From positions 14,818,001 to 14,882,000 of the forward strand of contig NW_027361825.1 in NCBI RefSeq assembly GCF_039654945.1: DNA of 64,000 nt, read 5' to 3'. The notes below the pieces were generated by a model that made no database searches, had not been told where the DNA came from, and saw only the letters and a list, made by a program, of their open reading frames with translations. The number at the start of each line of letters is the position of its first letter. Position 1 is the first letter of the stretch. Shown here piece after piece: positions 24,931-64,000 of this stretch. A program made the translations under genes and the position numbers. The stretch is from Dendrobates tinctorius (taxonomy: Eukaryota).

Positions 24931-25059
24931 GAAGTTCTGCTGCAGTATAAGGCTGTGTATAGAGAAGCGTGAGGCAATGCAGGTGGAGGTGTGTATAAGG
25001 CCACATTCACACGTTCAGTATTTGGTCAGAATTTTACCTCAGTATTTATAAGCCAAAAC

Positions 25060-42269: not shown

Positions 42270-43065
42270 GAATAGCGTGTAAGCTCTTATGGTCAGTGTC
42301 ATCAACTCTCCCTCTCTCTTCTGGAAAGTGTAAGCTCTTATCAGCAGGGTCCTCTTTCCTGTAGAGTGTAAACTCCTATGTTCAGTTGGATCCACTCTCC
42401 TTTGTAGAGTGTAAGCTCTTATGGTCAGAGCGGTCCTCTCTTCCTATCCTGTAAAGTGTAAGCTCTTATAGTTAGCTTGGTCCTCTCTTCCTCTCCTGAA
42501 GAGTCTAATCTCTTATGGTCAGTGGTTTTCTTTCTCCTGTAAAGAGTAAACTCTTATGGTCAGCAGGGTCCTCTCTCTCTTCTGTAGAGTGTAAGTTCTT
42601 ATGGAGAGCAAGGTTCTTTCTCTCCTGTAGAGTTTAAGCTTTTATGGTCATTGGGTCCTCATTCTTTGCTGTAAAGTGTAAGATCTTATGGTCAGTGGGG
42701 TTCTCTCTCTCTCTCCTGTGCAGTGTAAGCTCTTATAGTCAGAGCGATCCTCTCTCTCTCCTGTAGAGTATAAGCTCTTATTGTCAGCGAGGTCTTCTCT
42801 CTTTCCTATAGAGTGTAAGCTCTAATGGTCAATGTTATCATCTCTCTCTTTCCTGTAGAGTGTAAGCTCTTGTGGTCAGTGGAGTCCTCTCTCTTTCTCT
42901 CCTGTAGAATGTAAGCTCTTATGGTTAGCAAGGTCCTCTCGCTTTCTCCTGTAAAGTATAAGCTCAGTAGGGTCCGCTCTCTCTGTAAAGTGTAAGCTGT
43001 TATGATCAGCAAGAACGTCTTTCTCTGTAAAGTGTAAGATCTTAGGGTCGGCGGGGTTCTCACTC
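42270..43065. repeat. ~40-bp tandem array
   Basis: Roughly 19 diverged copies of TAGAGTGTAAGCTCTTATGGTCAGCAGGGTCCTCTCTC. Confidence 0.9.
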
Positions 43066-43262
43066 TTTCTTCTCCCCATGTGTATTTTCTGAGCATTTAC
43101 AAGCTTTCCCACATCGAAATTGAGCAAATTTTTTTTCCGTAAATTACATTTATTGGGGAAAATTTGTTGAATTTGAATTTCAAAAGATCTGCTCATCTTG
43201 AATCACTATTGTATTGACCGGTAGAATAACATTCACATGTCTCTTTTCCTGTGTAGTAAGTG

Positions 43263-43731
43263 CAGTGGCGTAGCAACTGTTTGTGGCGCCCAGGGCGGTC
43301 GAAAATTTGCCGCCCCTTTGGTCGTTGATAATCCGGAAGCATCCGAAGAGCCCACACTACACTCAAAGATCTAATTTTTAGTCTGCTACTAACTCTGCTG
43401 TTATTATGTCTACATTTCAAGACTTTCATCTTCTTGCAGTTCTCTATATATATATGTATGTATTAGCTTGATGATAATGGATGAAGACCTAATGGCTTTT
43501 TTAATAATAATTTTTAATAATGTGACAGAAAAAAAAACAGAAAGTACAAATTCTTTTCGAAACTTGGGAAAAGTTCAGCGGTGTTCGCCGGGCCGGAAGT
43601 GCGCTGCCACGCCCACGGTGGAGACACACAGATAGGTCCTGCTGGCTGCTGCACTGTGCCTCCGCGCTTCTCCCACAGAGGAGAGGAATTGCTGCTGCTA
43701 CCACGCCGCCCCCACACACGTGCCGCCTGGG
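43263..43731 (-). mobile_element. hAT-type MITE, truncated copy (inverted relative to 46028-46538)
   Basis: Begins with TIR CAGTGGCGTAGC; near-identical reverse complement of about 46058-46538; the inner TIR is missing. Confidence 0.85.
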
Positions 43732-43829
43732 AATACATTTTATTTTCTAAGGTCTGTGACAACCACGGGCGGAGCACACGTGTGCGCACACGGCCTCCAC
43801 CACAGTATATCAGCAGTGCATGGGTTACT

Positions 43830-44070
43830 TGTGGTCACGTGATACCAGTTCCACTTATTCCCTCCCACTTTCCCAGAGCGGTTTCCATAGGCTTGACGTA
43901 ACGCCTAACTCCGGTCACATGTCTCCTGTTTACGTTCATGCCTAGCTACTACAACTCCCAGAACACCCCGCGCCTTTAGCTTGTGGGATTTGTAGTTCTA
44001 GGTGCCATCAGGACAATAGACAACGGCTTCCAAAAGAACTACATGTCCCAGGATCCCGGGCGGGGATGAC
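43830..44070 (+). promoter_or_regulatory. Housekeeping-type promoter and putative exon 1 of the STK25-like gene
   Basis: Three ACTACAnnTCCCA (ZNF143/THAP11-type) motifs at 43948, 43984-43996 (reverse) and 44038. TGACGTAA CRE-like sites at 43894 and 44067, CACGTG E-box, GGGCGGGG GC box, and consensus donor GTAAGT at 44071. Confidence 0.7.
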
Positions 44071-44455
44071 GTAAGTACGTGTGTGGTATCAGGGAGGACT
44101 GTTTTGCTCTCTGTATAGAGCAGGCCAGCTATTAGGACCCTGTGTATTGCTGTGCTGAGTGGCTATGGCTCAGTGCTATGGGTTGCCATAGATTAGTATA
44201 GGAGGGAGCTGTGGTGTACTGGGCTCCATACATCCCAGCAGTAGGGACATTTTATCTCTGCACATTGCAGCCACTGCCTATGACTATTGGTAGCAGAACA
44301 GTCTCACAGCTGCTGCTTCTTGTCAGTGTGTTGCATTCAGGGCTGTGCAGATTATAGAGGGGGCGAGCGATGTGGGGCAAGTTGTGTGCGCTGTGCCGTC
44401 ACCCCCAGTCTATGGGTCACTGATCTGTCACTGAGCGGAATCAGATTGCTCCAGA

Positions 44456-44485
44456 ATGGCGCACCTACGGGACTTCCCATCACAG
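44456..44485 (+). CDS. STK25: STK25-like kinase, first coding exon portion (MAHLRDFPSQ)
   Basis: 10 codons resembling the STK25 N-terminus MAHLRGFANQ, ending at phase-0 donor CAG|GTAATT; likely acceptor TTCAG| at 44340. Confidence 0.85.
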
Positions 44486-45079
44486 GTAATTCTCACTCTT
44501 AATGCAGTACACCGCTATTGGGTCGCCCACCAAGAAGCCGCGCTAACTCCGCCAGCCTCCAGATCTGATAGGTAACGTGGCTTCTTCACGGGTCTGTTTT
44601 CGTTGCATCGTGTCTGTTGTGCACTAGTCTCATGAGCTGCACCTGCACTAACCGGCTCCAGAGTTGCGCACTCAGCACTGATCCACGTACAGCAGTACAG
44701 AATGAGCCTCAGGGATCAGCTGAAAGAATGTCGCCTTCAGGCAGTCGTTATTTTTCCCATGCAGATTGGAAAGTGAAGACCGTTTGTGGTTGATTTCAGA
44801 AAAACAAAACTGATTGTGATTTAATATCAAAGTGACTGCTGTCTGTACACAGAATCCACCACTGGTTATTGCTACACGAGGAGGACTGTGACCGGTATAA
44901 CTGCCCGGCGCAGCCTGCATTACGCCACCACTTGCCCCGGGCTTTGTATACAGAATTCAGTAAAGGAAATGGGACGGGGGGACGGAGGGAAGCAGCTGCT
45001 GTCATGTGACGACTCATCTAGAAAGTAAATGGCAAAGGCACTAGGTATTGTGGCTTTCTGATTATTTCTTCCTCTGTAG

Positions 45080-45310
45080 GGATCGAGAATGGACCCAGAA
45101 CGCCTCTTCACCAAGCTGGAGCGCATTGGGAGGGGATCATTTGGAGAAGTGTACAAAGGTATAGAGAATCGCAGCAAAGAAGTGGTGGCCATCAAGATCA
45201 TAGACCTGGAAGAGGCAGAAGATGAGATTGAGGACATTCAACAAGAGATCACTGTTCTGAGCCAGTGTGACAGTCCTTATATCAATCGCTATTATGGCTC
45301 CTACCTGAAG
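45080..45310 (+). CDS. STK25: STK25-like (GCKIII/YSK1) kinase, second coding exon (N-lobe)
   Basis: 231-nt phase 0/0 exon bounded by CTCTGTAG| and |GTAACG. Encodes GSRMDPERLFTKLERIGRGSFGEVYKG...KEVVAIKIIDLEEAEDEIEDIQQEITVLSQCDSPYINRYYGSYLK; VYKG, KEVVA and PYI.RY favour STK25 over STK24/26. Confidence 0.92.
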
Positions 45311-45374
45311 GTAACGTCCTAAACCTTTATTAATGCGCTCTGTACTAGGAAACTGAGTCTCGATGGGAGACTTA

Positions 45375-45780
45375 GGCCAGCGTCACACTACCGTGGAATA
45401 CGGACAAGTGCTATGCGAGAAAACATTGCATAGCACTCATTCTAGTGTTATTCTTTGGGGCAGATCATATCTGCGATTTTCTCATGCTGAATCGGTCGCT
45501 GCATGCTGCGATTGGCAATGAGACTTGGCCGAGTCTTGGCTCACTTGCATCTATGGGTGCGAATGACACAACGCACATCACTCGGATATAATCTGAGTGC
45601 GGTGCGATGTACGGTGACGCCGGCAATGGAGGAGATGGAGAAACTACTTTCTCCACCTCCTCCGCAGCTGTGCTCTGATCAGCTCTGTGTGAGAGGATGG
45701 GAGTGCAGTAGCAGGACACTCGACTCACACTCGCAGCAGAGCTATCGCATCGGATGCCATACGCTAGTGTGACCCCAGCC
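45375..45780. mobile_element. PIF/Harbinger-type MITE
   Basis: TIRs GGCCAGCGTCACACTA / TAGTGTGACCCCAGCC flanked by TTA. Confidence 0.7.
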
Positions 45781-46027
45781 TTAAAGGGATTGTTCAGCCC
45801 AAAGTGTTGCAAAGCACAAAGAAATTAAACTTTCTTATCCTCAAAGTGTCCTGATTTCTATGTCAGTTCAGGGAGCTTCACTTCCATTTTCGTTTTCAAC
45901 CAGTAGAGCGCTCCCTGTCTATCTCTGCGCAACACGTTGGCTAATATTATGAGCACCCAGATTTCTTAAGACGAGCTGATGGCTGCTATCAAAGCAACCT
46001 GGGCTTCCATAACACCTCAGCAGTGCC

Positions 46028-46538
46028 CAGTGGCGTAGCGTGGGGGGGCGGTCCGCCCCAGGTGGCACGTGTGTGGGGGCGGCGCGGCAGCAGCAGCAAT
46101 TCCTCTCCTCTGTGGGAGAAGCGCGGAGGCACAGTGCAGCAGCAGCAGCCAGCAGGACCTGTCTGTGTATCTCCACCGTGGGCGTGGCAGCGCACTTCCG
46201 GCCCGGCGAACACCGCTGAACTTTACCCAAGTTTCGAAAATAATTTGTACTTTGTTTTTTTTTCTGTCACATTATTAAAAATTATTATTAAAAAGCCATT
46301 AGGTCTTCATCCAGCATCATCAAGCTAATACATACATATATATACTGTATATAGAGAGAACTGCAAGAAGATGAAAGTCTTGATGTGTAGACATAATAAC
46401 AGCAGAGTTAGTAGCAGACTAAAAATTAGATCTTTGAGTGTAGTGTGGGCTCTTCGGATGCTTCCGGATTATCAATGACCAAAGGGGCGGCAAATTTTTC
46501 GACCGCCCCGGGCGCCACAAATAGTTGCTACTCCACTG
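46028..46538 (+). mobile_element. hAT-type MITE, complete copy
   Basis: TIRs CAGTGGCGTAGC / GCTACTCCACTG; abuts a Tc1 3' fragment (about 45965-46027); no 8-bp TSD. Confidence 0.85.
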
Positions 46539-47142
46539 ACTTTATGTAACATTGATCATAATTATTCTCTTAGGAATTGCTATTAATACAATATTTAATT
46601 TACCGTACATTAATATTTCATCCCCAGCCTGAAGATGTTTTGCTCATCTAGATAGGTACAATTTGGCTCCTTCATGTGACACGTATTAGCACTGCCAAAT
46701 ACTTTTAGTTTCCTTTTCATTAGAGTCACTCACATCCTTCTGCTGTTCATATGTCATTGGGTAGACAATACTTTATTTGTACATCATAATCTGGGCGTGA
46801 TCGGCGCAAGAAAAAACTAATGAAGGAGACTTTAAATAGACATAAAGACTAAACTGCCAATGTATGCATCATCCATAAATACCTTTTGCATCATAACTAG
46901 ATAAACAAGCTACCTACTAACTGAATAAAAGCTGGGTTATTTCTATAGTGACAGTAATAGAAGCACAGCAGGTGATACAACACTTCATCAGGTAAGTGCA
47001 TGTCTGCTGATAATATGTTGATATAGTGGTGGAGAACATTACTGCTGGAGAAATGGGCAAAAACCAGCAAAAAAAAATCTACTTCAAAATCAATTCAAAT
47101 CTACAAATATTATTAATTAACGGCAGGCACAGACGCGATTAT

Positions 47143-47825: not shown

Positions 47826-50800
47826 ATATGTTCATTGGATTTATGCCAAATGTTTACAATTTTATTTTAATTGCTTGTCCAAATACATGAAACAATAAAT
47901 TAGACCTGTTTCACTTCCTCCCCCCTTTGCAAGAGTCATGATTTTTTTATTCTTCCATCCACATCACTGTATAATTTTTTTTGTTTTTCTTTTGAGGTTT
48001 GAGTTGTAGTTTTGAATGACATCATTTAATCAATTGATAGACTGGAAAAGGGCAAATTGATTAAAATAATTCCAAGTGTTGTGAAATTGCACAAAAACCA
48101 CAATTTCACTAATTCATTGTGCAGTGAAAATTAACCTGATAATATACCACAGATCAAAGAAATGACAGAGATACCTAACTTGTATAGAATTTTTTTTATT
48201 TAAGTGGTGAAAAAAATATAGAAATTTTGAAAAAAAAATCCACAATTTTTTAAGACCTGTGACGTTTTCATTTTTACATCGGTGGAGATGTGAGGATTTT
48301 TTTGCATGGGCAGTTTATGTTTTTATTGATACCATTTTGAGGTTGATGCACCTTTTTGATCGCTTCATAATGCATTATTTTGCGGTGCTGTTAAACCTGA
48401 AAAAACACAATATTAGCATTTTGATTTTTTATGTGGTTAATCAATAATTTATTTTCATATATCAGACTTACTGACACTGCGATGCTACAAATGAAATATT
48501 CTACTGAAGAGGTTCAAATGGAGAACTGTTAAAATGAAGGAACGCCAAAGAATATATAAAATATAACTTTTAATCAAAATCAATTAAAAAGGACAAACAA
48601 CGACCAACAGACATAGACACCACACTTAAAAGTGCATTCTGAGTTCTCCCAGTGATAAGCGACCAAAACTGAGCACTTGCCTACCAGCAGAGGTTGGCAC
48701 CTTAAATGATACTGCATGCAATAGGCGGCCCAGCTCCTCAGTGGCTGTCCCACTCTGCCCTGGAGCACCCTATAAATTGGTCATGGAAAAATGACCAGAA
48801 TGACTGGGTAACATGTGGAGGTATATGGTGTTGGTCAATTAATGGGAGAAAAATAGTAGAAAAGAACGGCACTCACCGGGTAGTATAGTCAAGGCTTTAT
48901 TGTAAAAGCATATCAGCGGGAGAACGGGTGCAAAAAGGGAATTAGACCTACCGGTAATTCTGTTTCCTGTAGTCCCTCAGGACAGCACCATGGAGGACGT
49001 CCTTCCTTGCCCTATAGTGGGACAGGATCAGAGAGAGGTTAAAAGGCCCCTCCCACCTCCACCCTCCAGCGTTTTTTCAAAGTACCACCGTGGATGGATG
49101 GAAATGGTCTAAACACGCCCTTACAAACGCGTCTGTAAGACCCTTTAGCGGCTCCATCCCCATCTCGAGCCACGATGACCTGATGGATGAACAATCTGCC
49201 GATCGATTCCATGCAAGCCTAAAGACAAACATAAGGGAGGGAACTAAGGGTGCTGTCCTGAGGGACTACAGGAAACAGAATTACCGGTAGGTCTAATTCC
49301 CTTTTTCCCTTACGTCCCTCCGGACAGCACCATGGAGAATACCAAAGCAAAGGTCTCAGGGTGGGTACAGAAGCCCCCAGATCAAAGTTCTAGGTAAAAA
49401 CCAGTCTAGATCTAGACATTATCTATAAGATGAGAGGAAATCTAGATATCGAAAGGGATCTACAAAGGTAATCACCGTAGTGAGTGTCTGATATATGTCT
49501 ATAATGGCCAATTTCAGTATGAATGTGGCAAACAAGATTTGCAGTGGAACAACCTGTTGCACCCCAATACCACTAATAAACTGCAGTGAATTACAGTTAT
49601 TGTGATAGATACTTATGAACACCGCAGTCACAGAAATAGGATTAAAACCTTATTGCCCAGCAAAAGGTATGGTGATAACTACAGCCATAATACAAAGAGG
49701 ACTGTACAGACCGTTAATTCGCTGTATGTGCTTATAATACAGGATAGTTCCTTCGTCGGTCCTCCTGGGCTCGGCTTAAACCTTGGCTAGAGACCACCTT
49801 ACCATACTACAAGGAAACCTGCAGGCCAGAGACCATGCTCCGCTGGAAGATCAGAGCAATAACAGTACATGGAAAATAGCGGAGTATTGAGACGTATGTA
49901 CCCTACTCATCCAGGAGATCATGTGTATTCTGAATCCTTTACATGTCCAAACCTCAAGAAAGGGTTGGCTATTATTTAAGACTAAGGAAATACTCCATCT
50001 GGCAGGTAACTAGTCCTGCCACTACCAACATTGGCTTTTCATTAGAAGCATTGAAAGGGAAATGTGGATCCTCACGCCTGTTTTACTGATGTTAGACACT
50101 GGAGTCTGGACTTTGGAACTGAGGAGAGTAAGTGTGTGCTTCTATACAAGTCATTAGCCCAGACACTGTAAATGTGTCAACTTATTCATATGTTATATCC
50201 TAAAAGGCAATCTTCTTAGAGATATTTATACCACTGACTGCTATGGTGCGAGGAACCACACTCTATAACTAGAGGGAAGTAGGTTTCCTCCCATCGCAGA
50301 GGGGATTGACTACTGCGAGGCAGATGGGCTATGGGTTCTCGACTGCAAGAGTCATGGATACCGCTTCTTTACGTTAGGAGCCCTGACTCCCGTAAGAGCA
50401 GCGAGTATGGGATCCTCTGCCACCTGACGCAGGGCTGCTGAAACGCCACCAGGTACAAAAAGTAGTGATGCCACCCCTGGTAAACATAATACAACTGATT
50501 TATAGGACAAGAATCTGCCTAATGGGTCTCTATCAAGGAAACCAGTCCGACTGCTCTATGTGGAGTCGGGAAGAATTGTTTCCTCCCACCTTATGGGATT
50601 TTCTGCACCCAGACTATGTCCACTTAAAGGATGAACCCCAAAGACGTATGTCTCCCTTTAAAAGTTAACTATGAGAGGGACCTGCCTTTAGCCCTGAAGA
50701 CAGTAACTCACTTGAGGGTTCTGTTCCAAATAGAAGAAATGTTAAGTTACTAGGCCAATTCAAGCATAACTGTTCGTCTGGCTAAGTCCAGTTGCCAACA

Positions 50801-51039
50801 ATGAAGCAACAGAAACTGGGTCTAGGCCCGAAACACAAAGACCAGAGTTGGGGCCTGAGACAAAATGTGAAGTGGTAGGCCAACCATACAAGGTGTGGCC
50901 CACAAAAATGCCCAAGTCAGAAGGTCTAAGCCAGAGGCCCAAAGCCACAGCACCAGAGGTATTATGAAGCACAGAGGTATTAGGACCCATAAATGACCCC
51001 CTGAGGCGCAGGGGTACCAAAGCCTTATGACGCCATATG

Positions 51040-52080
51040 ATGCACAGAAGCCTTATGCTGTACAGAAGCGCCATGACGCAATATGATGTGCCAAGACACT
51101 ATGGGGCGCTATGAAGCAATATGATGCATAGAGCCACTATGAAGGCTTATGATGCAATATGATGCACCAAGGGACTATGAAGCTATATGATGCAGTATGA
51201 CGCACAGACACTATAGAGCTCTATGGTGCAGCACAAAGGCACCATGAAGCCACATAGTGGAATACGCTGCATAGAGGCACCATGATGCCGCATGGTGAAC
51301 AGAGGCACTATGCAGCCCCCTGATGCAGTCTGATGCACAAGGGAACTATGAAGCCACATGATGTACAAAGGCACTATGAAGCCATATGATGCACAGAGGT
51401 ACTATGAAGCACAATGATGCCACGTGAAGCGCAATGATGCAATATGAAGCGCAATGATGCAATATGAGGCACACTGATGCAATATGATGCAATATGAAGC
51501 ACAATGATGCAATGTGATGCAATATGAAGCACAATGATGCAATATGATGCACAATGATACAATATGATGCACAATGATACAATATGATGCACAATGATGC
51601 AATATGATGCACAATGATGCAATATGAAGCACAATGATGCGATATGATGCAATATGAAGGACAATGATGCAATATGAAGCACAATGATGCAATGAGGCAC
51701 AATGATGCAATATGAGGCACAATGTTGCAATATGATGCACAATGATGCACAGAGGCCGTATGATGCACAGCGGCAGTATGGCGCACGGCGGCAACATATC
51801 GTGCACGGCAGCAGTGTATCGTGCGCAGCGGCCGTGTATCGTGCGCAGCGGCCATGTATCGTGCGCAGCGGCCATATATCATGCAAAGCGGCCATATGTC
51901 GTGCACAGCGGCCATATGTCGTGCACAGCGGCCATATGTCATGCACAGCGGCCATATGTCGTGCACAGCGGCCATATGTCGTGCACAGCGGCCATATATC
52001 GTGCACAGCGATACGATGTTCAGCGGCGATACGATGCACAGAGACAAAACGATGCCCCTATGATGTAATATGATGCACAG
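51040..52080. repeat. Compound minisatellite inside the DIRS element
   Basis: GCACAATGATGCAATATGAT and GTGCACAGCGGCCATATGTC 20-mers. Confidence 0.9.
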
Positions 52081-53118
52081 ATTACAGCCCTGCTTGAAGG
52101 TGCCAAACAAGAGGCCAGGTCCCCAGCTACCTCCAAGAGAGCAATCAGAGATCCGGATAAACCTCCGCTCTGAATAGTATATCTCAATTGTCAGACCAGC
52201 TCCACCTGAAGGAGCTAATTAAAGAGACTCAGGTGGAGAGCAGATTCCCTGGAGACCCTGTGTTGCATTCCACCATGTGTCCAGCCATAAGGCTCTGTGC
52301 AGACCTGGTCTGCAACTAACTGAGGTCCCATTATGAGATGTAGCTTGGACAAATGGCCTTACTATAGCCTAGAGGTCCAAGGCCTAGCTGCTTATATGTG
52401 GAGCATATCTCAGCACATGAGGCTCTAGGCCCAGCTTTGGCACCAAGGCATGAGGCTAGTATTAACCCAGAGGCCAGGCCCTGAACATAACATTCCAGCG
52501 TGCACTCACCTGTGCTGGCTCCACACCTGCTAGAAAGACAGGGGGAGCTGGTAACGCCGAGAGCCTACCATGGAGGGAAGTGGCGTTCGGTCAGGAATGT
52601 TGTATTACTGCCAGTGATTTCCTTTCATGTGCCCCACGAGATCCAAGAAACTAGGCTGTTGCCTGTCTCGTTCTGCACTTCCGCGTTCTGCCGTGGAACG
52701 CACGCCGACCTTATGCTGACGTTGCCGGAGGCGCGGCGGCCTTCTCCACCGCATGTTTTCCGGAATTAGCCATGTTTTGCCGGCCGGCGTCCGAGCCGAG
52801 AGACTCCCACCGGGAGGAGCGGCTCAACCCAGGAGCACGTCCGCTCGACTGGTCTCTGGGGCAGAGGGACTCCCCACCGGAGAGTGTCGGCCCTGGGCCC
52901 CTTGACAGGGGGAAGGATTGGACGCGCCGCACGATCCCCCTGAGCCCATCATGCAGGCTGGCTGAGGAACTTCTCCAAGAGGTGTCAGCCACGGTCCACT
53001 TGACAGCGGGGAAGAGAGGGCTGAGACCCCCAATCCCGTCTGGTACAACGAATGATGGCTGAGGGACCTCTCCCAGAGAGGAATCAGCCACAGACCACCT
53101 GCCAGGGGAATGGAAAGC

Positions 53119-54558
53119 AATAAATAATAATAATAATAATAATTTTTTATTTATATAGCGCCAACATATTCCGCAGCACTTTACAATTAAGCGGGGACAT
53201 GTACAGACAATAAATTCAATACAAGTTAAGACAATTCAAACAGTGACATTAGGAGTGAGGTCCCTGCTCGCAAGCTTACAATCTACAAGGAAATGGGGGG
53301 ACACAGTAGGTGAAAAATGCTTGTTAATTCAGGTCTGGCAATTATAATAGGGATTTTCATATAAAGCTGCATGATCCGGTCATCAGCCCGTGTGTTTAAG
53401 TGCAATAGACAAGTATCAAGTGCAGTTATCATGTGCATGAAGGGTGGGGAGACAGATGAATAGTAGGGTGCAGATTCAGAATAATATTTGGAAGAAGGGA
53501 ACAGGGCAAAGTTAGCTTGCTGGGTAGTTGATGTGGTAGGCTTGTTTGAAGAGATGGGTTTTCAAAGCGCGCTTGAATAGGTCAGGGCTAGGTATCAGTC
53601 TGATCGCCTGGGGAAGTGCATTCCAGAGAGCTGGAGCAGCACGAGAGAAGTCTTGGAGGCGGAGGTGCGAGGTTCGGATTACGGGGGATGTTAGTCTTAG
53701 GTCATTTGTAGAACGGAGGGCACGTGTAGGGCGATAGACAGAGATGAGAGAGGAGATATAAGGCGGTGCAGAACAGTGGAGAGCTTTGTGGGTGAGAGAG
53801 ATGAGTTTATACTGGACCCTGTAGCGAATAGGTAGCCAGTGTAATGACTGGCACAAGATGGAGGCATCGGTGAAGCGGCTGGACAGAAATATGACCCTGG
53901 CTGCCGCATTCAAGATGGATTGGAGAGGAGAAAGTTTGGTAAGAGGGAGACCGATCAGAAGAGAGTTGCAGTAGTCCAGGCGAGAATGAATAAGAGCGAC
54001 AGTAAGAGTCTTAGCAGTTTCAAAGGTGAGAAAAGGTCGGATTCTGGAGATGTTTTTAAGATGCAGGTGACAAGAGCGACTGAGTGATCGGATGTACGGA
54101 GTAAAGGAAAGTTCAGTGTCGAATATGACCCCAAGACAGCGGGCATGCTGCTTGGGAGTTATGGTTGAACCCTCCAGGGTTATTTCGATGTTAGGTAGAG
54201 TGAGGTTAGTAGAGGGGAGAAACACAAGAAGTTCAGTTTTAGAGAGATTTAGTTTCAGATAGAGGGAGGACATGATGCTAGAGACAGCAGACAGACAATC
54301 CTTGGTATTTTGAATTAGGGTAGGGGTGATGTCAGGGGAAGAAGTGTATAATTGGGTGTCATCAGCATAGAGATGATACTGGAACCCAAATCTGCTGATT
54401 GTTTGTCCAATAGGGGCAGTGTATAAAGAGAAGAGGAGGGGGCCTAGGACTGAGCCCTGCGGGACCCCGATAGTAAGGGGACGAGAAGAGGAAGAGGAGC
54501 CGGAAAAAGATACAGTGAAGGAGCGGTCAGAGAGGTAGGAGGAGAACGAGGAGAGGGC
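53119..54558 (-). mobile_element. 5'-truncated L2 (CR1/L2 group) LINE nested in the DIRS element
   Basis: RT motifs [46 protein letters not shown] (ORF to stop at 53512); (TTA)n-type tail at 53120-53143; AATAAAT at both junctions. Confidence 0.93.
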
Positions 54559-55279
54559 TAATAAATGTCCATAGGCTATCTTCGCTCTAAGAGCAACCTC
54601 TCATACAACCGTCCCCTGCCGTGACAGGAAAAACACTGGAGGGTGGAGGTGGGAGGGGCCTTTTAACCTCTCTCTGATCCTGTCCCACTATAGGGCAAGG
54701 AAGGACGTCCTCCATGGTGCTGTCCGGAGGGACGTAAGGGAAAAAGGAGATAGCAACGACGATCGTTTTGCTATCTCCTTTTTGCACCCGTTCTCCCGCT
54801 GATATGCTTTTACAATAAAGCCTTGACTATACTACCGGGTGAGTGCTGTTCTTTTCTACTATTTTTCTGCTATGTGGATTAGCTCATTTTCTATAAATGT
54901 GCACCTAAGGGTTAAACAGTTGTATTGCCGGCTGCATCTCTTTTATACACATATGATGGTTCGGATGTGTGGACTATTGTGATGGTGCTCGCCTTCTATT
55001 TCTGGACTTTGTATTGCCAATTAATGGGAGAGAGACTAGACAGAAAGAAAGAATAAAAAAAAAGTGAACGTGACCCCTCTGCACTGTTCCTATACTGAAA
55101 GCCTGCCTAGACAGCTGAGGTTGGCACCCTATTTAACAGCAGATATGGTGCCCTCACTCAATGACGTCTGATCCTGGGAGTCCTTGATGTAGATATTTAG
55201 TCCCAGGAGCAAATGGCAGCTGAATAAAGGCAACAAAATATAGCCTCACACAAACCGCAGGCAGATCCCACAATGATAT

Positions 55280-55939
55280 TGTCACAGAGTGACCACGACA
55301 GTGTGGAGCCAGAAGACCGCAGTGATTGCTCCTACTCTGGTGCTGAGATGATGCACTTCTTCATTTGTTTATTTCTTCTAGCAGAACAGTGGTTAATCGG
55401 CCATGTTGGAAATCCCTGTGCTCTCAGCTGAGCTCGGTTAGCCTCTCCTTTTCCCTTTATAATCTGGGCTCTGATACAAATCCTTGTCAGAGCTAGCTTT
55501 ACTGCTGCATGGCTAATGGAGGGAGAGTTCTTATGAGAAGGAGAGTTGGAGGAGTTATCAGTGACTGTTGCTTGGTTTGTATGCGTGGTAATTCCTTATC
55601 CTTCTCTTCTTTGGTTTAATTCCCTATCTTCACACCCCAGTGCATTCCTCTGTTATATGTGAGTAAATATTTTGTATGCCTGGAGTTTTCTGTTAACCCT
55701 TGCTTGTGTTGCCTTGTTTGTGAAGTTGGTGTACTACGGTGCACAGTAGCGCCCCTCTTACCTGGGTGGAGAAAGAGATCAGATGGAGGGCTAACTCAGG
55801 AGACAAGGCAAAGGTGGAAGCCCCAGCATCTTCACCTTCGGAAGTATCCCAGGGAGTAGGGTGAGCTAGGGCGCCCACTAGTGTTAGGGACAGGGAAGGA
55901 GTCCCTGGTCCTGGGTCACCCGACAGCTGTGTCATGACA
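55280..55939. mobile_element. Solo LTR (Gypsy-type)
   Basis: TGTCA...TGACA flanked by 5-bp TSD GATAT. Confidence 0.85.
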
Positions 55940-56672
55940 GATATTGTGTGGATCCTTCCCCTGTCTATGAAAAGATGGGGATAGCATGTGATCAAGCAAT
56001 AAATAGGGAACAGACAAAAAGGATACTCATCAGAAATATGTCTTGTGACCTCTACACGTTTGACCACAAAAGGCTCATCAGGAGGTGAGATAAATTTTCA
56101 TTAAAAGTTATATTTGACAATACTGTTTTTTCTTTCTTTCTTTTTAATAAGGGATATTAGTTGGTGATTTAAAGTTTTTAGATTTTTTACATTTTAAAAA
56201 CACATTTCTTTTTACTTTATTTTGTAGTCCACTTGGTGGATTTTAATATATGATTGTTTAATAGCTTATATTATATACTGCAATACCATACTATTGTGGT
56301 ATATAGCAAAAACCATGATCTTCTATTATGCCCAGCCACAGGTTGGTCTTCACAGCAGCACCATCTTGTTAGCAGGCATGGCTGCCATCAGCAGGCTGCT
56401 GGGTGTCTTGGAAACTCAATGGAACTCCACGATTGTAGCTTCCATGGTCACATGAAACAAAAGAACACTACAGGGTGCTGGGATGCACCACGATCACTCC
56501 TATGCACATACATTTGGATTGTCTCTAAGAAGTCAAAAATGTTCTCTGCCTCAGGATTTTACAATATGTAAAAGTCTTGAGCCACAGATTTGTAATACTT
56601 TTGATGATACAGAATTTCCGTTGTTTCAAAAAAAAATTCTGCTGTAACTTTGAAATTCTTTTTTTTTTTTAG

Positions 56673-57082
56673 GTTTCTTACTTTTACACTTTTCATCAAC
56701 ATGATTTCTATGTCTCCCAAAATGTTTTGCTCTCACTATGGACCATCTACAAGACCTCCGGCCACTCATCTCTGCTATGAGGTGTATGATCAGAACCAAC
56801 GTATTGATTGTGGTCACTTTACCAACAACGAAGAGTCTCAAGCTGAAGAGGTGTTTCTTGGAGATAGATTCAAAGATGCTTGGAGAAAATGCACAATTCT
56901 ATGGTACATCTCCTGGAGTCCTTGTGATGATTGCATTCAGATCTTGCTGAACACATTCATTCCCAGAAACCCTCATGTCAAGTTGCACATCATATTTGCC
57001 AAGGTCTACAAGGGCACTACTAAGACTAAGATCCGAGAACTTAACAGTAGAGGAGTAAAAATACAAGCAATGTCCCACGAAG
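56673..57082 (+). CDS. APOBEC/AID-family cytidine deaminase-like core exon (QAE instead of HAE)
   Basis: THLCYEV, GHFTN, SQAEEVFL, CTILWYISWSPCDDC, NPHVKLHIIFAKVY, LNSRGVKIQAM. Acceptor (T)nAG| at 56672 and donor GAAG|GTCAGT at 57083; 410 nt, phase 2 to phase 1, open throughout. Confidence 0.88.
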
Positions 57083-57172
57083 GTCAGTATGGTCCAGGAG
57101 AGTTCACCTAATGCTATCACATTTTTAAATGTGCAGAGTTTTCTGAATCTTAGAGGTTCTCCACTGCTTTAA

Positions 57173-60100
57173 CCCCTTCATGACCCAGCCTATTTTGACC
57201 TTAATGACCTGGCCATATTTTGCAATTCTGACCAGTGTCCCTTTATGAGGTAAATAACTCTGGAACGCTTCAACGGATCCTAGTGATTCTGAGAACGTTT
57301 TTTCGTGACATATTGGACTTCATGTTAGTGGTAAATTTAAGTTGATTATTTTTGAGTTTATTTGTGAAAAATAAGAAATTTGGCAAAAATTTTGAAAATT
57401 TTGCAATTTATTCTGTTAAACCAGAGAGTTATGTGACACCAAAATAGTTACTAAATAACATTTCCCACATGTCTACTTTACATCAGCACAATTTTGGAAA
57501 CAAATTTTTTTTTTGTTAGGAAGTTATAAGGGTTAAAAGTTGACCAGTGATTTCTCATTTTTACAACAAAATTTGCAAAACCATTTTTTTAGGGACCACC
57601 TCACATTTGAAGTCACTTTGAGGGGTCTATATGGCAGAAAATACCCAAAAGTGACACCATTCTAAAAACTGCACCCCTCAAGCTACTCAAAACTACATTC
57701 AAGAAGATTATTAACCCTTCAGGTGCTTCACGAGAACTAAAGCAACGTGGAAGGAAAAAAGGGACATTTTAATTTTTCCAACAAAAATTTTCATTTAGCA
57801 TAAATTTTTTCATATTCACATGGGCAGCAGAATAAAATGGATACTAAAATTTGTTGGGCAATTTCTCCTGAGTACACCGATACCTCATATGTGGTCATAA
57901 ACAACTGTTTGTGCGCACGACAGGGCTCAGAAGGGAAAGAGCGTCATTTGACATTTTGAATGGAAAATATGCTGGAATATTTAGCGGATGCCATGTTGCG
58001 TTTGGAGAGCCCCTGTGTGCCTAAACATTGGAGCTCCCCCACAAGTGACCCCATTTTGGAAACTAGACCCCCCCAAGGAACTTATCTAGATGCATAGTGG
58101 TCACTTTGAACCCCCAGGTGCTTCACAAATTGATCTGTCCAAAAAAAGTACTTTTTTTTCACAAAATTTTTCTTTTAGCCTCAGTTTTTTCATTTTCACA
58201 TGGGCAACAGGATAAAATGGATCCTTAAACTTGTTGGGAAATTTCTGCTAAGTACACCGATACCTCATATGTGGTCATAAACCACTGTTTGGATGCACGG
58301 CAGGGTCCAGAAGGGAAGGAGCACCATTTGACTTTTTGAATGGAAAATTAGCTCCAATTGTTATCGGACACCATGTCGCATTTGGAAAGCCCCTGTGTGC
58401 CTAAGCAGTGAAAACCCCCCACAATGACACCATTTTGGAAACTAGACCCCATAAGGAACTTATCTAGATGTGTAGTGAGCACTTTGAACCCCCAAGTGCT
58501 TCACAAAAGTTTATAACGCAGAACAGTGAAAATAAAAAATCATTTTTTTTCCACAAAAATTATTTTTTAGCACGCTATTTTTTATTTTCACATGGCTAAC
58601 AGGAGAAATTGGACCCCAAAAGTTGTTGTCCAGTTTGTCCTGAGTACGCTGGTACCCCATATGGGGGGGGAACCACTGTTCGGGCGCACAGCCGGGCTCA
58701 GAAGGGAATGAGCGACATTTGACTTTTTGAAATGAAAATTAGCTCCAAAATTTAGCTGACGCCATGTCATGTTTGGAGAGCCCCTGTGTGCCTAAACTTT
58801 GGAGCTCCCCCACAAATGACCACAGTTTGGAAACTAGACCCCCTAAGGAACTTATCTAGATGCATAGTGAGCACTTTGAACCCCCAGGTGCTTTACAAAA
58901 GATTATAGCCGTGAAAATAAAAAATCATTTTTTTCCTCAAAAAATGATTTTTAGCCCGCAATTTTTTTTCACAAGGATAACAGGATAAATTGGACCCCAA
59001 AAGTTGTTGTCCAGTGTGTACTGAGCACGCTGGCACCCCATATGTGGGGGGACCACTGTTTGGGCACACGTCGGGGCTTGGAAGGGAAGTAGTGACATTT
59101 TGAAATGCCGACTTGATGGAATGGTCTGCGGGCGTCATGTTACGTTTGCAGAGCCCCGATGTGCCTAAACTGTGGAAGCCCCCACAAGTAACCCCATTTT
59201 GGAAACTAGACCCCCCAAGGAACTTATCTAGATATGTGGTGAGCATTTTGAACCCCCAAGTGCTTCACAGAAGTTTATAACGCAAAGCTGTGAAAATAAA
59301 AAATCATTTTTTTCCTCTTAAAATGATTTTTTAGCTCGCAATTTTTTATTTTCACAAGGGTAACAGGAGAAATTGGACACCAAAAGTTGTTTTCCAGCTT
59401 GTCCTGAGTACGCTGGTACCCCATATGTGGGGGGGAACCATTGTCAGGGCTCAAAATGGAAGTAGTGACGTTTTGAAATGCAGACTTTGATGGGATGGTC
59501 TGCGGTCGTTGTTACATTTGCAGAGCCCCTGATGTGCCTAAAACAGTGGAAACCCCCCACAAGTGACCCCATTTTGGAAACTAGACCTTCCAAGGAACTT
59601 ATCTAGATGTCTGGTGAGCACTTTGAACCCCCAAGTGCTTCACAGATGTTTATAACGCAGAGCAGTGAAAATAGAAAATCATTTTTTTTCCACAAAAATA
59701 ATTTTTTAGCCCCCAATTTTTTATTTTCCCAAGGGTAACAGGACAAATTAGACCATAAAAGTTGTTGTGCAATTTTTCCTGAGTACGCTGATACCCCATA
59801 TGTTGGGGTAAACCACTGTTTGGGCACATGTTGGGGCTTGGAAGGGAGGGGGCACCATTTGACTTTTTGAGCACAAAATTGGCTGGAATCAATGGTGGCG
59901 CCATGTCGCGTTTGGAGACCCCCTGATGTGCCTAAACAGTGGAAACCCCTCAATTCTAACTCCAACCCCAACACACCCCTAACCACAACCTTAACCCCAA
60001 CACATCCCTAACCCTAATCCCAACCCTAACCATAACCCTAACCTGAACACACCCCTAACCCTAATCCCAACCCTAACCATAACCCTAACCACAAGCCTAA

Positions 60101-60963
60101 CCCTAATCCCAACCCTAACACACCCCTAACCCTAATCTTAACCCTAATTCCAACCCTAACCCTAATTGCAACCCTAACCCTAATTCTAATCCTATTTCCA
60201 ACCCTAACCCTAATTCTAACCCTAATGGAAAAATTTTATATAAAAATATTTTCTTTATTTTATTAGTTGTGCCTACCTATGGGGGTGATAAAGGGGGGGT
60301 TTATTTACTTTTTATTTTACTTTGATCACTGTGAGAGTTTCACAGTGATCAAAATGAATCAATGGAATCTGCAGCCGGCAGATTCGAACGGGCACATTAC
60401 GCATGTTCCCGCCATTTTCCAAGATGGTGGTGTCCATGATCCGGGACTGCGGGACACCGGGAGTGACAGCGGCACTCTAAATGTACCGGGGGTGGGAGGG
60501 GAGGTGATTGGAAGCTGGCGGGGAGTGGAGGGAAGGCGGGGAGCAGATGATGACAGTAGCGGCAGATCGCCGCTGTCATTCAGTGGCGGGGTGCAGATTG
60601 GCCCCATTAGCTGGTGTGGGGGGGGTCGGATCCGTGTCTCCAGCCATGGCCGATGCTATTTCAGCATCGGCCATGGCTGGTTTGTAATATTTCATCAAAT
60701 TTCATTGATGAAATATTACTATAGCTCTGATTGGCTGTTAAAAGTGAAACAGCCAATCAGTGCGATCGTAGCCACGTGGGGGCGAATCACCCCCCTGTGG
60801 TGAAGTACAAAGCCCCCTGTATCAGCGGGTCGGGTGACCTTTCATTGACCCCGGTCACCCGACCCGCAGGGGGGCTTTAAAGTCATGACACAGCATATGC
60901 GTCATGTGTCGGATTGGCACCAACTTTCATGACGCATACGCTGTGTCACAGGTCGGGAAGGGG
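57173..60963. mobile_element. Non-autonomous piggyBac-type element
   Basis: TTAA|CCCCTTC...GAAGGGG|TTAA; about five ~375-bp internal tandem units (GAAACTAGACCCC...GGAACTTATCTAGA); no transposase ORF. Confidence 0.85.
59955..60226. repeat. Degenerate telomere-like (CCCTAA)n tract
   Basis: CCCTAA mixed with CCCAA, CCATAA and TTCTAA variants. Confidence 0.85.
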
Positions 60964-62599
60964 TTAAAATGCTGATGACCTATACTTAGGATAGGTCATC
61001 AATATCTTATCAGTGGGGTTGTGACACCCACTACCCTGGGTAGTGCACATCCACGACATATTCAAATCAATAGGGGAAGGAAATGCAGTACCTGGCCATG
61101 GCCACACTGCCATGTCCACCGCCAGTATTGAGAACAACTGATCGCGAGGATGACAGGTGTCGCACCCCACTGATCAGACATTGATGATCTATCATAAGGA
61201 TAGCTGATCAATGTGAAAATAGTTGACAATATCTTTAAGCATTATACACACCTAATGTCAATCCCATTATTGATGTGACATAATATAGAGAAGTCAAACT
61301 TTTCATTATAATATTTTTCATTGCTGATTGAGGGTCATTTAATTTGTCCTTCGGATGAAGTTTACACAGCTAATATATGTATTTTTGCAGTCAAAGCCAG
61401 GAAAGTAACCTAAAATTATGAAAACATCACAGAAATACTTAGAACGGCAATCGATGTGAGCCAAATCTTGATCAAGCCAGGCTATTTCACAACAATGTTG
61501 TTACGGCAGCGGAACACGCTTAAAAAAATATAAATAAAGCGTGTTCGCCACCTGGGGTCCACCGTGCGGCAGGTGTAATAACCTCTGCTAAATAGGCAGA
61601 GCACAAGGACGGTAATGTGCACAGGGAAGAACTGCACCTAGTGCACAAAAGCAAGCTCTGTTAGAACTCACAGAGCTGCACACAAGAACACAAATACAAA
61701 AAACGCTGAGTCTGTATGTACTGCACAGATAATCAGCGGCACACGTGCGGTAGCCAGAGATCGGAGTAGTTAAAGACGTCACTACCACCAAATGGACTTA
61801 CCGTGACTGGACGTGTGCATGGCGTCGCAACTGCGGTCGCCAAAAATGACTGCAAGCGCAAATTAGCAGGTGCAATGCAAGATGCTGGCTGCTGTAACAG
61901 GTGGAGCTTGAGCGCGCTGGTGCTAGCACGAATACTGGCTGTATCCCAATCACTCACACAATCGTATTATCAGAGGGAAGGGGTTTCTTAATAAGTCATT
62001 CACCAGTCCAAGCATCCATCACCAAACACACAGCAGCAAGTATAGAAAAGACTAGCGCATGGCAGAATAGCCATGCGCACTTTTTATAGCATGCGGGACC
62101 TTCCGGAAATCTCCAGAGCCCCGAGCATAACCAATGAAATCAGGAGCAGGACCTGAGCACCTGACTCCTAAACTCCAATGAGAGCTCGTCCCGTGAGCAT
62201 GCTCAGAAGCAGGGAAAAAGGACTTAGCCTCTGGAGACAAATGTGAGAATCTGGGTTGCTGCATAAGCATAGAATGACCCAGATTCCTAACAAATGTAAT
62301 GGCTATATACTGTATCTTATTAATATATATCCCTTGACAGCAGAGTTTAGGGGAGAGAATGATCGGGAATGTTGAGTTGCACAATTCCTTTTGGAAGTAA
62401 CATATTTTCCTCTCGCCATTGAAACAAACATGTGGGAGAATTAACAAAAAAAAGAAAGAGAATAAGGAACATATTTGAGATGATTGAACCTTTTCAAATT
62501 CATATTCGCCATATTGGCAGAATTAATACCTCAGGACGATATGTGGTACTCTTGATGCTTTTCATGGACATGTGAATCCTGTGTCTGCTCTCCATAGAT

Positions 62600-62752
62600 A
62601 TGAGAAAGGGGATAGAGAGAAAGATAGAGAAAGAGAGAGATAAAAAAAGAGAGGGGGGAGAGAAAAAGAGAGAGTGGAAGAGAAAAAGATCAAACGATAG
62701 GAAGCAAGAGAGAAGGCAAGAAATAAAGAGAAAAAAGAGAGAGGGGAGACGA

Positions 62753-62792
<40 letters not shown>

Positions 62793-62795
62793 AAC
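62600..62795. repeat. GA-rich / (AAAG)n microsatellite
   Basis: Polypurine run ending in AAAG repeats. Confidence 0.9.
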
Positions 62796-63770
62796 ATGCA
62801 AATGTGTTATCTTTTTTTGAAACATTTATGAAAATGGTCTTTACAAGGAGACATTGAGGTTGAGTTAAGATACCTATTAATTTTTCAGAAAATTTTGGGT
62901 GATGCCATGTCCCAAAGACCCATAATTAATCTTGCTTAGGCTGAAAGACCCATCAAACCGCTCAGTGTGCACCTGTGGAAAATTATTGTGAGAATGGGGG
63001 GGAGTTATACATTTTTAGAAAACAGAAAATCCACAAGGAATTGATCTCCTATTAAAAGCTAACAAATGGCAACAAAAAATTGTGCTTTGTTTTCTTTTTC
63101 CCAAAACTAAATTTTGCTTTGCTTTTTCTCAAAACTATAGTGATACAAGTTGATAAAAACAAAAATCTTGGAAGGAAAATGTAAAGCCATACCTTAGGTT
63201 CTGTAGACATCTGTGCCAAAGCTTGTATTTAAAGTTAAGCAAAGCCAGATGATTCATTGTAGAACGGAGCTTAGTGCTGTCTGAGCTACTTCATTGGCTT
63301 ACAATTAAGTCTCTTGGGGTTCTCTTATATTAAAAAATGATGGAGATGCCAATGTTCATTCTAAATATTTATCATCTGAAAACTCGCTAATTCCTAAAAT
63401 TGGCTAATTTGAGGACTTGTTACATTTTTGCAGCATTTTATCATCCATATTATGACTGCAGGTCATGGACCACCCATAGTTCATGTAAACTCAACTTTGA
63501 AGACTATCGGATTCTACTATGACCGAAATTCAGTTCCGCTTCAAATCCTGTTGTAAAGACTCTAAGACTAGGTTCACATGACAGATTAAAATCTCCCATA
63601 GATTGGCCATTTGCATTGCTGCTGATCCTTACATCCATTATAATCCTTCAGTTTTTCTAAACAGAATCAGTTGGAAATACATAACAAGTGATATTATAGT
63701 AAATCTTTCCCCGGCTATGCCGAAAACTTGCATGAAAAGTGTTTAGCAAAACCTCAGAAAACACCATATA

Positions 63771-64000
63771 CAGTGGGGCAAAAAAGTATTTAGTCAGTCA
63801 GCAATAGTGCAAGTTCCACCACTTAAAAAGATGAGAGGCATCTGTAATTTACATCATAGGTAGACCTCAACTATGGGAGACAAACTGAGAAAAAAAAATC
63901 CAGAAAATCACATTGTCTGTTTTTTTTTCATTTTATTTGCATATTATGGTGGAAAATAAGTATTTGGTCAGAAACAAAATTTCATCTCAATACTTTGTGA
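63771..64000 (-). mobile_element. Second copy of the same Tc1 (runs off the window end)
   Basis: TA|CAGTGGGGCAAAAAAGTATTTAGTC..., nearly identical to 17596-17825, including the transposase stop region. Confidence 0.95.

Follow-up and report, generated by a model that had tools for sequence, protein, structure and literature searches.

Poison frogs appear to carry a tandemly duplicated AID/APOBEC gene in which the histidine that should hold the catalytic zinc is replaced by glutamine, and this Gln copy has been kept under purifying selection since the histidine was lost. We examined one exon of this gene in a 64-kb stretch of the Dendrobates tinctorius genome (hereafter the window) and compared it with orthologs, paralogs, and more distant relatives. 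With moderate confidence, we read the gene as a selectively maintained tandem duplicate with a crippled or altered zinc site, the product of which would most likely be a non-editing binder of nucleic acids.

The first-pass annotation described an open exon with good splice sites, and the sequence, its conservation among orthologs, and the boundaries of transcripts all agree with this description (Table 1). Inspection of the sequence and of its open reading frames showed that the spliced exon of 410 nt lies in a frame that stays open from 56650 to 57111. The exon consists of 28 nt of probable 5′ untranslated region, 127 codons, and the first base of codon 128. The untranslated region is assigned because the probable start ATG lies inside the exon, and the ATGATT at this position is conserved in all seven frog copies compared. 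The phase-2 exon start proposed earlier is therefore moot, as the frame most likely begins at the internal ATG, as it does in the NCBI model of Phyllobates terribilis. The translation reads TN-x3-S-QAE-EVFLG and, further downstream, WYISWSPCDDC. A GCT codon sits between the Gln and Glu codons, and the QAE motif noticed earlier, together with the intact catalytic Glu and PCxxC, can be read directly in the sequence. The acceptor is also kept in the orthologs of P. terribilis and Ranitomeya imitator, and it is the point at which the transcript contigs of three species cease to match the genome. The three Gln orthologs share the acceptor, the donor (AG|GTCAGTATGG), and the sequence context of the ATG. 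Three open reading frames located upstream of the exon have no match to any Pfam model.

Table 1. Positions in the D. tinctorius window of the core exon and of its main sequence features.
Feature	Position	Strand	Basis
3′ splice site: polypyrimidine tract and AG acceptor (AG at 56671-72)	56655..56672	+	Sequence
Core exon of the Gln-type frog AID/APOBEC gene	56673..57082	+	Pfam, PDB, ortholog alignment
Probable start codon ATG (protein begins MISMSP...)	56701..56703	+	Equivalent to residue 1 of XP_073497820.1
CAA, Gln replacing the zinc-ligand His of HxE	56839..56841	+	Sequence
GAA, catalytic (proton-shuttle) Glu of HxE, intact	56845..56847	+	Column invariant in two alignments
SWSPCDDC: SWS lead-in and both zinc-ligand Cys of PCxxC, intact	56911..56934	+	Sequence, alignment
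5′ splice site, GTCAGT donor (AAG|GTCAGT), phase 1	57083..57088	+	Sequence; identical in two orthologs
Intron, extends past the window end	57083..64000	+	High-copy repeats inside; last coding exon absent

The closest protein is XP_073497820.1 of P. terribilis (P0001; 168 aa, 90% identical), which also has QAE and begins at the Met equivalent to the ATG at 56701. At its locus (L001), the core exon is followed 5.4 kb downstream by a last exon of 125 nt that encodes the D-F-x-x-C-W helix region and the C-terminal helix. A further ortholog, CAJ0966896.1 of R. imitator (P0160), belongs to the 90% cluster of P0001 and again has QAE, and its core and last exons are intact at locus L004. The window is collinear with L001 on both sides of the exon, and also with L004, so we regard the three genes as orthologs. 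In all three, QAE is encoded with CAA, the frames are open, and the splice sites are intact. Identity to the orthologous exons is 91.7-92.7%, higher than the 82-86% of the adjacent upstream intron. Based on these loci, the gene is predicted to have two coding exons and to encode a single-domain protein of the AID/APOBEC fold with about 168 residues. A tblastn search did not find the last coding exon within the 64-kb window. The window and the orthologous loci cease to be collinear near 63775, about 160 nt short of the orthologs' last exon, which suggests an insertion in D. tinctorius.

The annotation of this gene in R. imitator is irregular. The deposited model CAJ0966896.1 (394 aa; L004 10001-26304, GCA_958301615.1) is a fusion of the deaminase core exon with a Tc1-like transposase fragment and a small exon of 72 nt (24975-25046). 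We found no counterpart of this 72-nt exon in the window. The fused model is probably an annotation artefact; alternatively, it could hint at a 5′ exon derived from a transposable element. The newer annotation of the species contains no gene model for the Gln copy, and in the newer assembly (L002) the copy was not found within 10 kb upstream of the His-type paralog P0004. At L004, the Gln core exon lies about 16 kb upstream of the His-copy core exon.

Several other differences and repeats were observed around the exon. A 3.3-kb segment of the window (43263-46538) is not found at the corresponding position in P. terribilis; its flanks (42936-43262 and 46539-47108) match L001 6910-7226 and 7491-8052, two blocks separated by only about 265 nt. 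By this comparison, the segment was either inserted in the lineage of the window or deleted in Phyllobates. A second region of about 7.6 kb (48490-56133) is absent between matching blocks of the P. terribilis locus. It holds a 253-aa open reading frame on the minus strand (53512-54273) without a Pfam match and coding-like low-complexity repeats (51346-52110), has high read depth in parts, and probably represents transposable-element insertions. Within the intron, a very high-copy repeat spans 57168-59950, with read depths of thousands to millions, and includes a tandem array of a 375-nt unit (3.8 copies, 58379-59817). The same repeat is found inverted in the intron of the P. terribilis His paralog (L001 22384-24066) and in direct orientation upstream of the His-paralog core exon in R. 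imitator. Also, degenerate interstitial telomere-like repeats (CCCTAA variants, about 250 nt) are located at 59977-60226.

A His-type paralog follows the Gln gene downstream in head-to-tail orientation in both P. terribilis (P0002) and R. imitator (P0004). The His paralog of P. terribilis is followed by a MABP-domain gene on the opposite strand, and Bufo gargarizans has one family gene followed by the same MABP gene. In the nucleotide tree of the core exon, the Gln copies are monophyletic (98% support) with the topology (P. terribilis, (D. tinctorius, R. imitator)) and are sister to the dendrobatid His copies, which form a clade of their own (100%). The Bufo copy and the transcript L005 group apart. 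Taken together, the tree and the head-to-tail synteny indicate that a frog-specific deaminase gene was duplicated in tandem within the poison-frog lineage and that the His-to-Gln change occurred before the genera split. The His codon is CAC in P. terribilis, R. imitator, and Bufo and CAT in L005, and all three Gln copies have CAA, so the likely origin of the Gln codon is one C-to-A substitution (CAC to CAA) in an ancestor that the three species share. This pattern points to a replacement of the zinc ligand that predates the divergence of Phyllobates, Ranitomeya, and D. tinctorius, with the Gln in place over millions of years. Since then, the Gln gene has remained intact, spliced, and transcribed, under constraint as strong as that on its His neighbour. 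The tandem pair, together with the placement in a frog clade described below, bears out the earlier suggestion of a divergent amphibian AID/APOBEC paralog of tandem origin.

The NCBI model of the Bufo gene (P0006, 159 aa) has an unrelated C-terminal tail, and a canonical last exon (DFRWCW...WLLDALISH) with a good acceptor lies at L006 11569-11690, 1.2 kb after the Bufo core exon; the deposited model therefore seems to have missed it.

For family placement, the 136-residue translation of the exon matched eight AID/APOBEC Pfam models above their gathering cut-offs. The best was NAD1 (86.7 bits against a cut-off of 27, E=2.6e-24 for the exon alone), and the full-length P. terribilis ortholog reached 115 bits. 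Among solved structures, chains of APOBEC3G, AID, A3A, A3B, A3H, and A1 were matched, the best being rhesus A3G (6wma, E=5.6e-19). These Pfam and PDB matches are far beyond chance, and the AID/APOBEC catalytic core recognized in the first-pass annotation is thus secure. The Pfam clade names were rejected as a guide to identity. The frog proteins score alike, at 100-127 bits, on the NAD1, APOBEC2, APOBEC_N, and 'NAD2' models, with models within a few bits of each other, whereas mammalian A3 and AID reach 190-225 bits per domain on the same models, about twice the frog scores. Furthermore, PF18782 is called 'NAD2' in one Pfam version and APOBEC3 in another, and mammalian A3 proteins are its top-scoring members. 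NAD2 was described as an amphibian-restricted clade (Krishnan et al. 2018, PMC5889660), and the frog family may correspond to it.

A profile search of 1.84 billion representatives recovered 319 relatives, among which only frogs (R. imitator, Spea bombifrons, and Rhinophrynus dorsalis) scored 222-304 bits; all others scored no more than 90 bits per domain. In a midpoint-rooted FastTree phylogeny of 127 domain pieces, the frog proteins (from Spea, Rhinophrynus, Leptobrachium, Bufo, Leptodactylus, and dendrobatids) form one monophyletic clade on a long stem. The neighbours of this clade are the Z domains of APOBEC3, AID, and AID-like genes of fish, and APOBEC1 falls on the opposite side. By sequence, then, the gene is placed in a frog-only clade beside AID/APOBEC3. 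The likeness to APOBEC1 proposed earlier is not supported, as the APOBEC1 proteins of lungfish, sauropsids, and mammals group separately in this tree and the best fold match is AID. An APOBEC5/NAD1 identity was also rejected. The published APOBEC5 signature is HAE-x3-L-x24-SxSPCxxC-x6-F-x17-Y..., followed by a long disordered C-terminus with PxK and KRKL motifs, and none of eight family members matched it in a regular-expression test. The spacing from HAE-x3-L to SxSPC is 17 residues instead of 24, there is no KRKL, and the sequence after the CW motif is only 29-38 residues long. APOBEC5 equals UA2 and, by its taxonomic distribution, probably NAD1.

The last exon of D. tinctorius lies outside the window, so the structure modelled is that of the P. 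terribilis ortholog P0001. The AF2 model (pLDDT 94.5, pTM 0.90) is predicted to adopt the deaminase fold, a five-stranded sheet flanked by helices, and Foldseek aligned it to AID, A3B, and A3G with TM scores of 0.85-0.90, with AID the best (0.90). The gene is therefore a member of AID/APOBEC by descent and fold. It is not a canonical catalytic member, since the Glu, the Pro, and both Cys are present and the His is replaced by Gln.

Among 157 aligned domains that cover this site (the family and its 150 best relatives), His is found in 154 and Gln in only one, which is the gene under study. The other two domains without His are an APOBEC-3C-like protein of Carlito syrichta (P0025) with YAE and a Logan protein (P0058) with DAE; both keep xAE and PCxxC despite the loss of His.

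The Gln copy has been constrained at the protein level. Over 127 codons, D. tinctorius and P. terribilis differ at 12 synonymous and 17 nonsynonymous positions (Nei-Gojobori dS 0.178, dN 0.058, omega 0.32; Fisher p=0.006 on site counts). A codon maximum-likelihood branch model (GY94/F3x4, seven-taxon tree) for the same 127 codons gave an omega of 0.45 for the Gln crown, 0.41 for the His clade, and 0.42 for the background. Fixing omega at 1 in the Gln crown worsened the fit (2dlnL=5.46, p=0.019), and a separate rate for the crown was not needed (p=0.87). When the last exons were added (168 codons, with D. tinctorius coded as missing there), omega of the Gln crown was 0.455, and omega=1 was rejected with p=0.0086, or p=0.0026 with the stem included. 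The crown and the background again did not differ (p=0.58), and the rate of the Gln copies is no different from that of the neighbouring His paralog (0.39) or of other copies in frogs. All divergence within the crown is later than the Gln change, so these values describe a protein constrained without the zinc His. An omega of 0.45, significantly below 1, is moderate and typical for the fast-evolving AID/APOBEC family. With 127-168 codons and three Gln lineages as its base, the case for purifying selection after the loss of His is solid but not overwhelming.

Members of the cytidine-deaminase superfamily coordinate their zinc through three residues, the His (or Cys) of [HC]xE together with both Cys of PCxxC, and a zinc-bound water that is activated by the Glu attacks C4 of cytosine. 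Gln would be a much weaker, neutral ligand, and both zinc occupancy and catalysis are predicted to fall sharply. A Gln-Cys-Cys site is thus expected to bind zinc weakly and to support poor or no deamination, and we infer a loss of zinc binding or activity. The residues of the pocket and of nucleic-acid contact (TN, E, SWSPC, and the loop-7 Tyr) are retained. With the zinc ligand lost, the remaining pocket conserved, and selection persisting, an editing-independent role appears most likely. The protein may be a binder of single-stranded nucleic acid from viruses or retroelements, a decoy for an antagonist, or a partner or regulator of the canonical copy next to it. That the AID/APOBEC fold can bind DNA without zinc is indicated by PDB entry 8fil, 'Zinc-free APOBEC3A (inactive E72A mutant) in complex with TTC-hairpin DNA substrate'. 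In addition, inactive AID/APOBEC copies are known to emerge repeatedly, and decoy or binder roles have been proposed for them (PMC5889660).

The Gln copy may alternatively be a still active cytidine deaminase in which the side-chain oxygen of Gln serves as the third zinc ligand, perhaps with altered affinity, pH profile, or regulation; we consider this unlikely. All three Gln orthologs strictly conserve the catalytic Glu, the Cys pair, SWSPC, and the residues that form the pocket, as catalysis would require, and selection is equal to that on the canonical copies, but nucleic-acid binding alone would likewise conserve the pocket residues. Carbonic anhydrase II variants in which a zinc-ligand His is changed to Asn or Gln reportedly keep some zinc binding and measurable activity, so 'dead' is not certain for a carboxamide ligand. 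Against an active enzyme, His mutants of AID, APOBEC1, and APOBEC3G serve as catalytically dead controls, and no domain other than the frog Gln copy has Gln at a site where 154 of the 157 related domains have His. In a more specific version, to which we give a somewhat smaller chance, the Gln-Cys-Cys site binds zinc with a metal affinity tuned such that deaminase activity follows zinc availability. If true, an active Gln-Cys-Cys site would give the cytidine-deaminase superfamily its first carboxamide zinc ligand of natural origin, and zinc-dependent activity would be a safety switch built into a mutator.

Transcript contigs also support the reading that we favour. We aligned contigs of four public sequencing runs to positions 55200-58200 of the window. 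Run X1, which bears the same species label and comes from a study other than the likely source study of the assembly, provided a 565-nt contig that covers 56671-57082 with no differences and extends past the exon by 24 nt of 5′ and 129 nt of 3′ sequence that are absent from the flanking genome. Runs X10 and X18, which bear two other species labels, provided contigs with identical exon boundaries and 6 and 13 differences, respectively, that continue for 189 and 357 nt beyond the donor with sequence not on the adjoining genome. The 5′ sequence carried by the boundary-respecting contigs is 22-25 nt long. Because the match stops at both splice sites and the extra sequence is located elsewhere, these three contigs are spliced transcripts; the evidence for transcription is this spliced structure, the RNA label of the runs being only a guess. 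Run X11 provided an ordinary genomic contig that continues through both splice sites. Contigs of three other species labels are 98.5%, about 96%, and 96.8% identical; the CAA codon itself is read in D. tinctorius, P. terribilis, and R. imitator.

The first-pass annotation had offered a dead binder and a young pseudogene as alternatives. A conserved and possibly non-catalytic protein fits the data; a young pseudogene does not, given the Gln shared by three species, the intact frames and splice sites, the spliced transcripts, and the dN/dS of 0.45. Neither CAT or CAC in reads nor a missing transcript, a missing downstream exon, and a neutral dN/dS were seen. A transcribed pseudogene in decay, in which the loss of His was the first hit and the frame stayed open by chance or through gene conversion from the neighbouring copy, is in our view improbable. 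The loss of a key zinc ligand in a tandem family member within a repeat-rich region, with no model in the newer R. imitator annotation and a Tc1 fusion in the older one, would suit such a history. The frames and splice sites are nevertheless intact in three species that have diverged to a dS of about 0.18, an omega of 1 is rejected (p=0.009) with no relaxation relative to the His copies, the exon is better conserved than its flanks, and spliced transcripts exist in three species. The monophyly of the Gln clade also speaks against recent conversion. A processed or decaying pseudogene was accordingly rejected, with no frame disruption, splice-site loss, omega near 1, or transcript absence seen. 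An assembly or sequencing error that hides a true CAT or CAC codon has next to no chance of being correct, as the same-species contig from another study shows no differences over the exon and the assemblies of two further species have the identical CAA.

Compared with known systems, the His-type frog paralogs (P0002 and P0004) are the nearest to the Gln copy. They belong to the same frog clade and share 68-75% core identity, the layout of core and last exons, the splice phase, the tandem head-to-tail position, and a similar omega. They differ in having the canonical HAE (CAC), a shorter last exon, and a length of 162 aa from the internal ATG, which rises to 213 aa in gene models that include a further coding exon upstream; a few clade-specific sites also set the Gln copy apart. 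In NCBI, these paralogs are named 'APOBEC-3H-like' and 'single-stranded DNA cytosine deaminase-like'. AID (PDB 5jj4 and 5w0z) is the best structural match to the ortholog model (TM 0.90, rmsd 1.8 Å, about 28% identity), and it is likewise a single-domain protein of similar size with SWSPC and the C-terminal D-[FY]-x-x-C-W helix. However, AID retains its zinc-binding His, acts as a proven mutator of ssDNA, and is found throughout jawed vertebrates, whereas the frog clade is separate, long-stemmed, and restricted to anurans.

The pseudo-catalytic N-terminal domain of A3G (6wma and 5k83), the best match by sequence in PDB, keeps its fold for nucleic-acid binding rather than catalysis, which is the function proposed here for the frog Gln copy. 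This domain retains the His-Cys-Cys site and zinc and is fused in cis to an active domain, whereas the frog copy has lost the zinc His and is a separate gene in tandem with a canonical copy. Predicted inactive copies in Ciona, sea urchin, and some APOBEC3s (PMC5889660) have also lost catalytic or zinc residues within lineage-specific expansions. Those copies belong to other clades and taxa, and the frog gene adds cross-species conservation and purifying selection after the loss. APOBEC5/NAD1/UA2 provides the top Pfam name by a few bits and also occurs in amphibians, but it differs in signature spacing and in its disordered tail, and the Pfam scores of the frog proteins are about half those of true members.

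The first-pass annotation also considered the paralog possibly undescribed. A literature search yielded no publication about the frog family or the His-to-Gln substitution, and nothing on His-to-Gln mutants of cytidine deaminases or on dendrobatid APOBEC genes. The claim holds in this sense and fails for the sequence itself, as the P. terribilis Gln protein is already auto-annotated in NCBI as 'APOBEC-3H-like'. Inactive AID/APOBEC paralogs are already known as well, and what the frog gene adds is a conserved, expressed, and constrained case paired with its canonical twin.

AID/APOBEC enzymes are the vertebrate genome's own mutators, and those of amphibians are little known. In poison frogs, a copy without the zinc His has been kept intact, expressed, and constrained across species beside its canonical twin, which makes the locus a natural experiment. 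This is not a new kind of system, but it is a dated case of the origin of a pseudo-enzyme inside immune gene clusters. The pair of Gln and His copies allows one to ask which APOBEC functions are independent of the canonical zinc chemistry.
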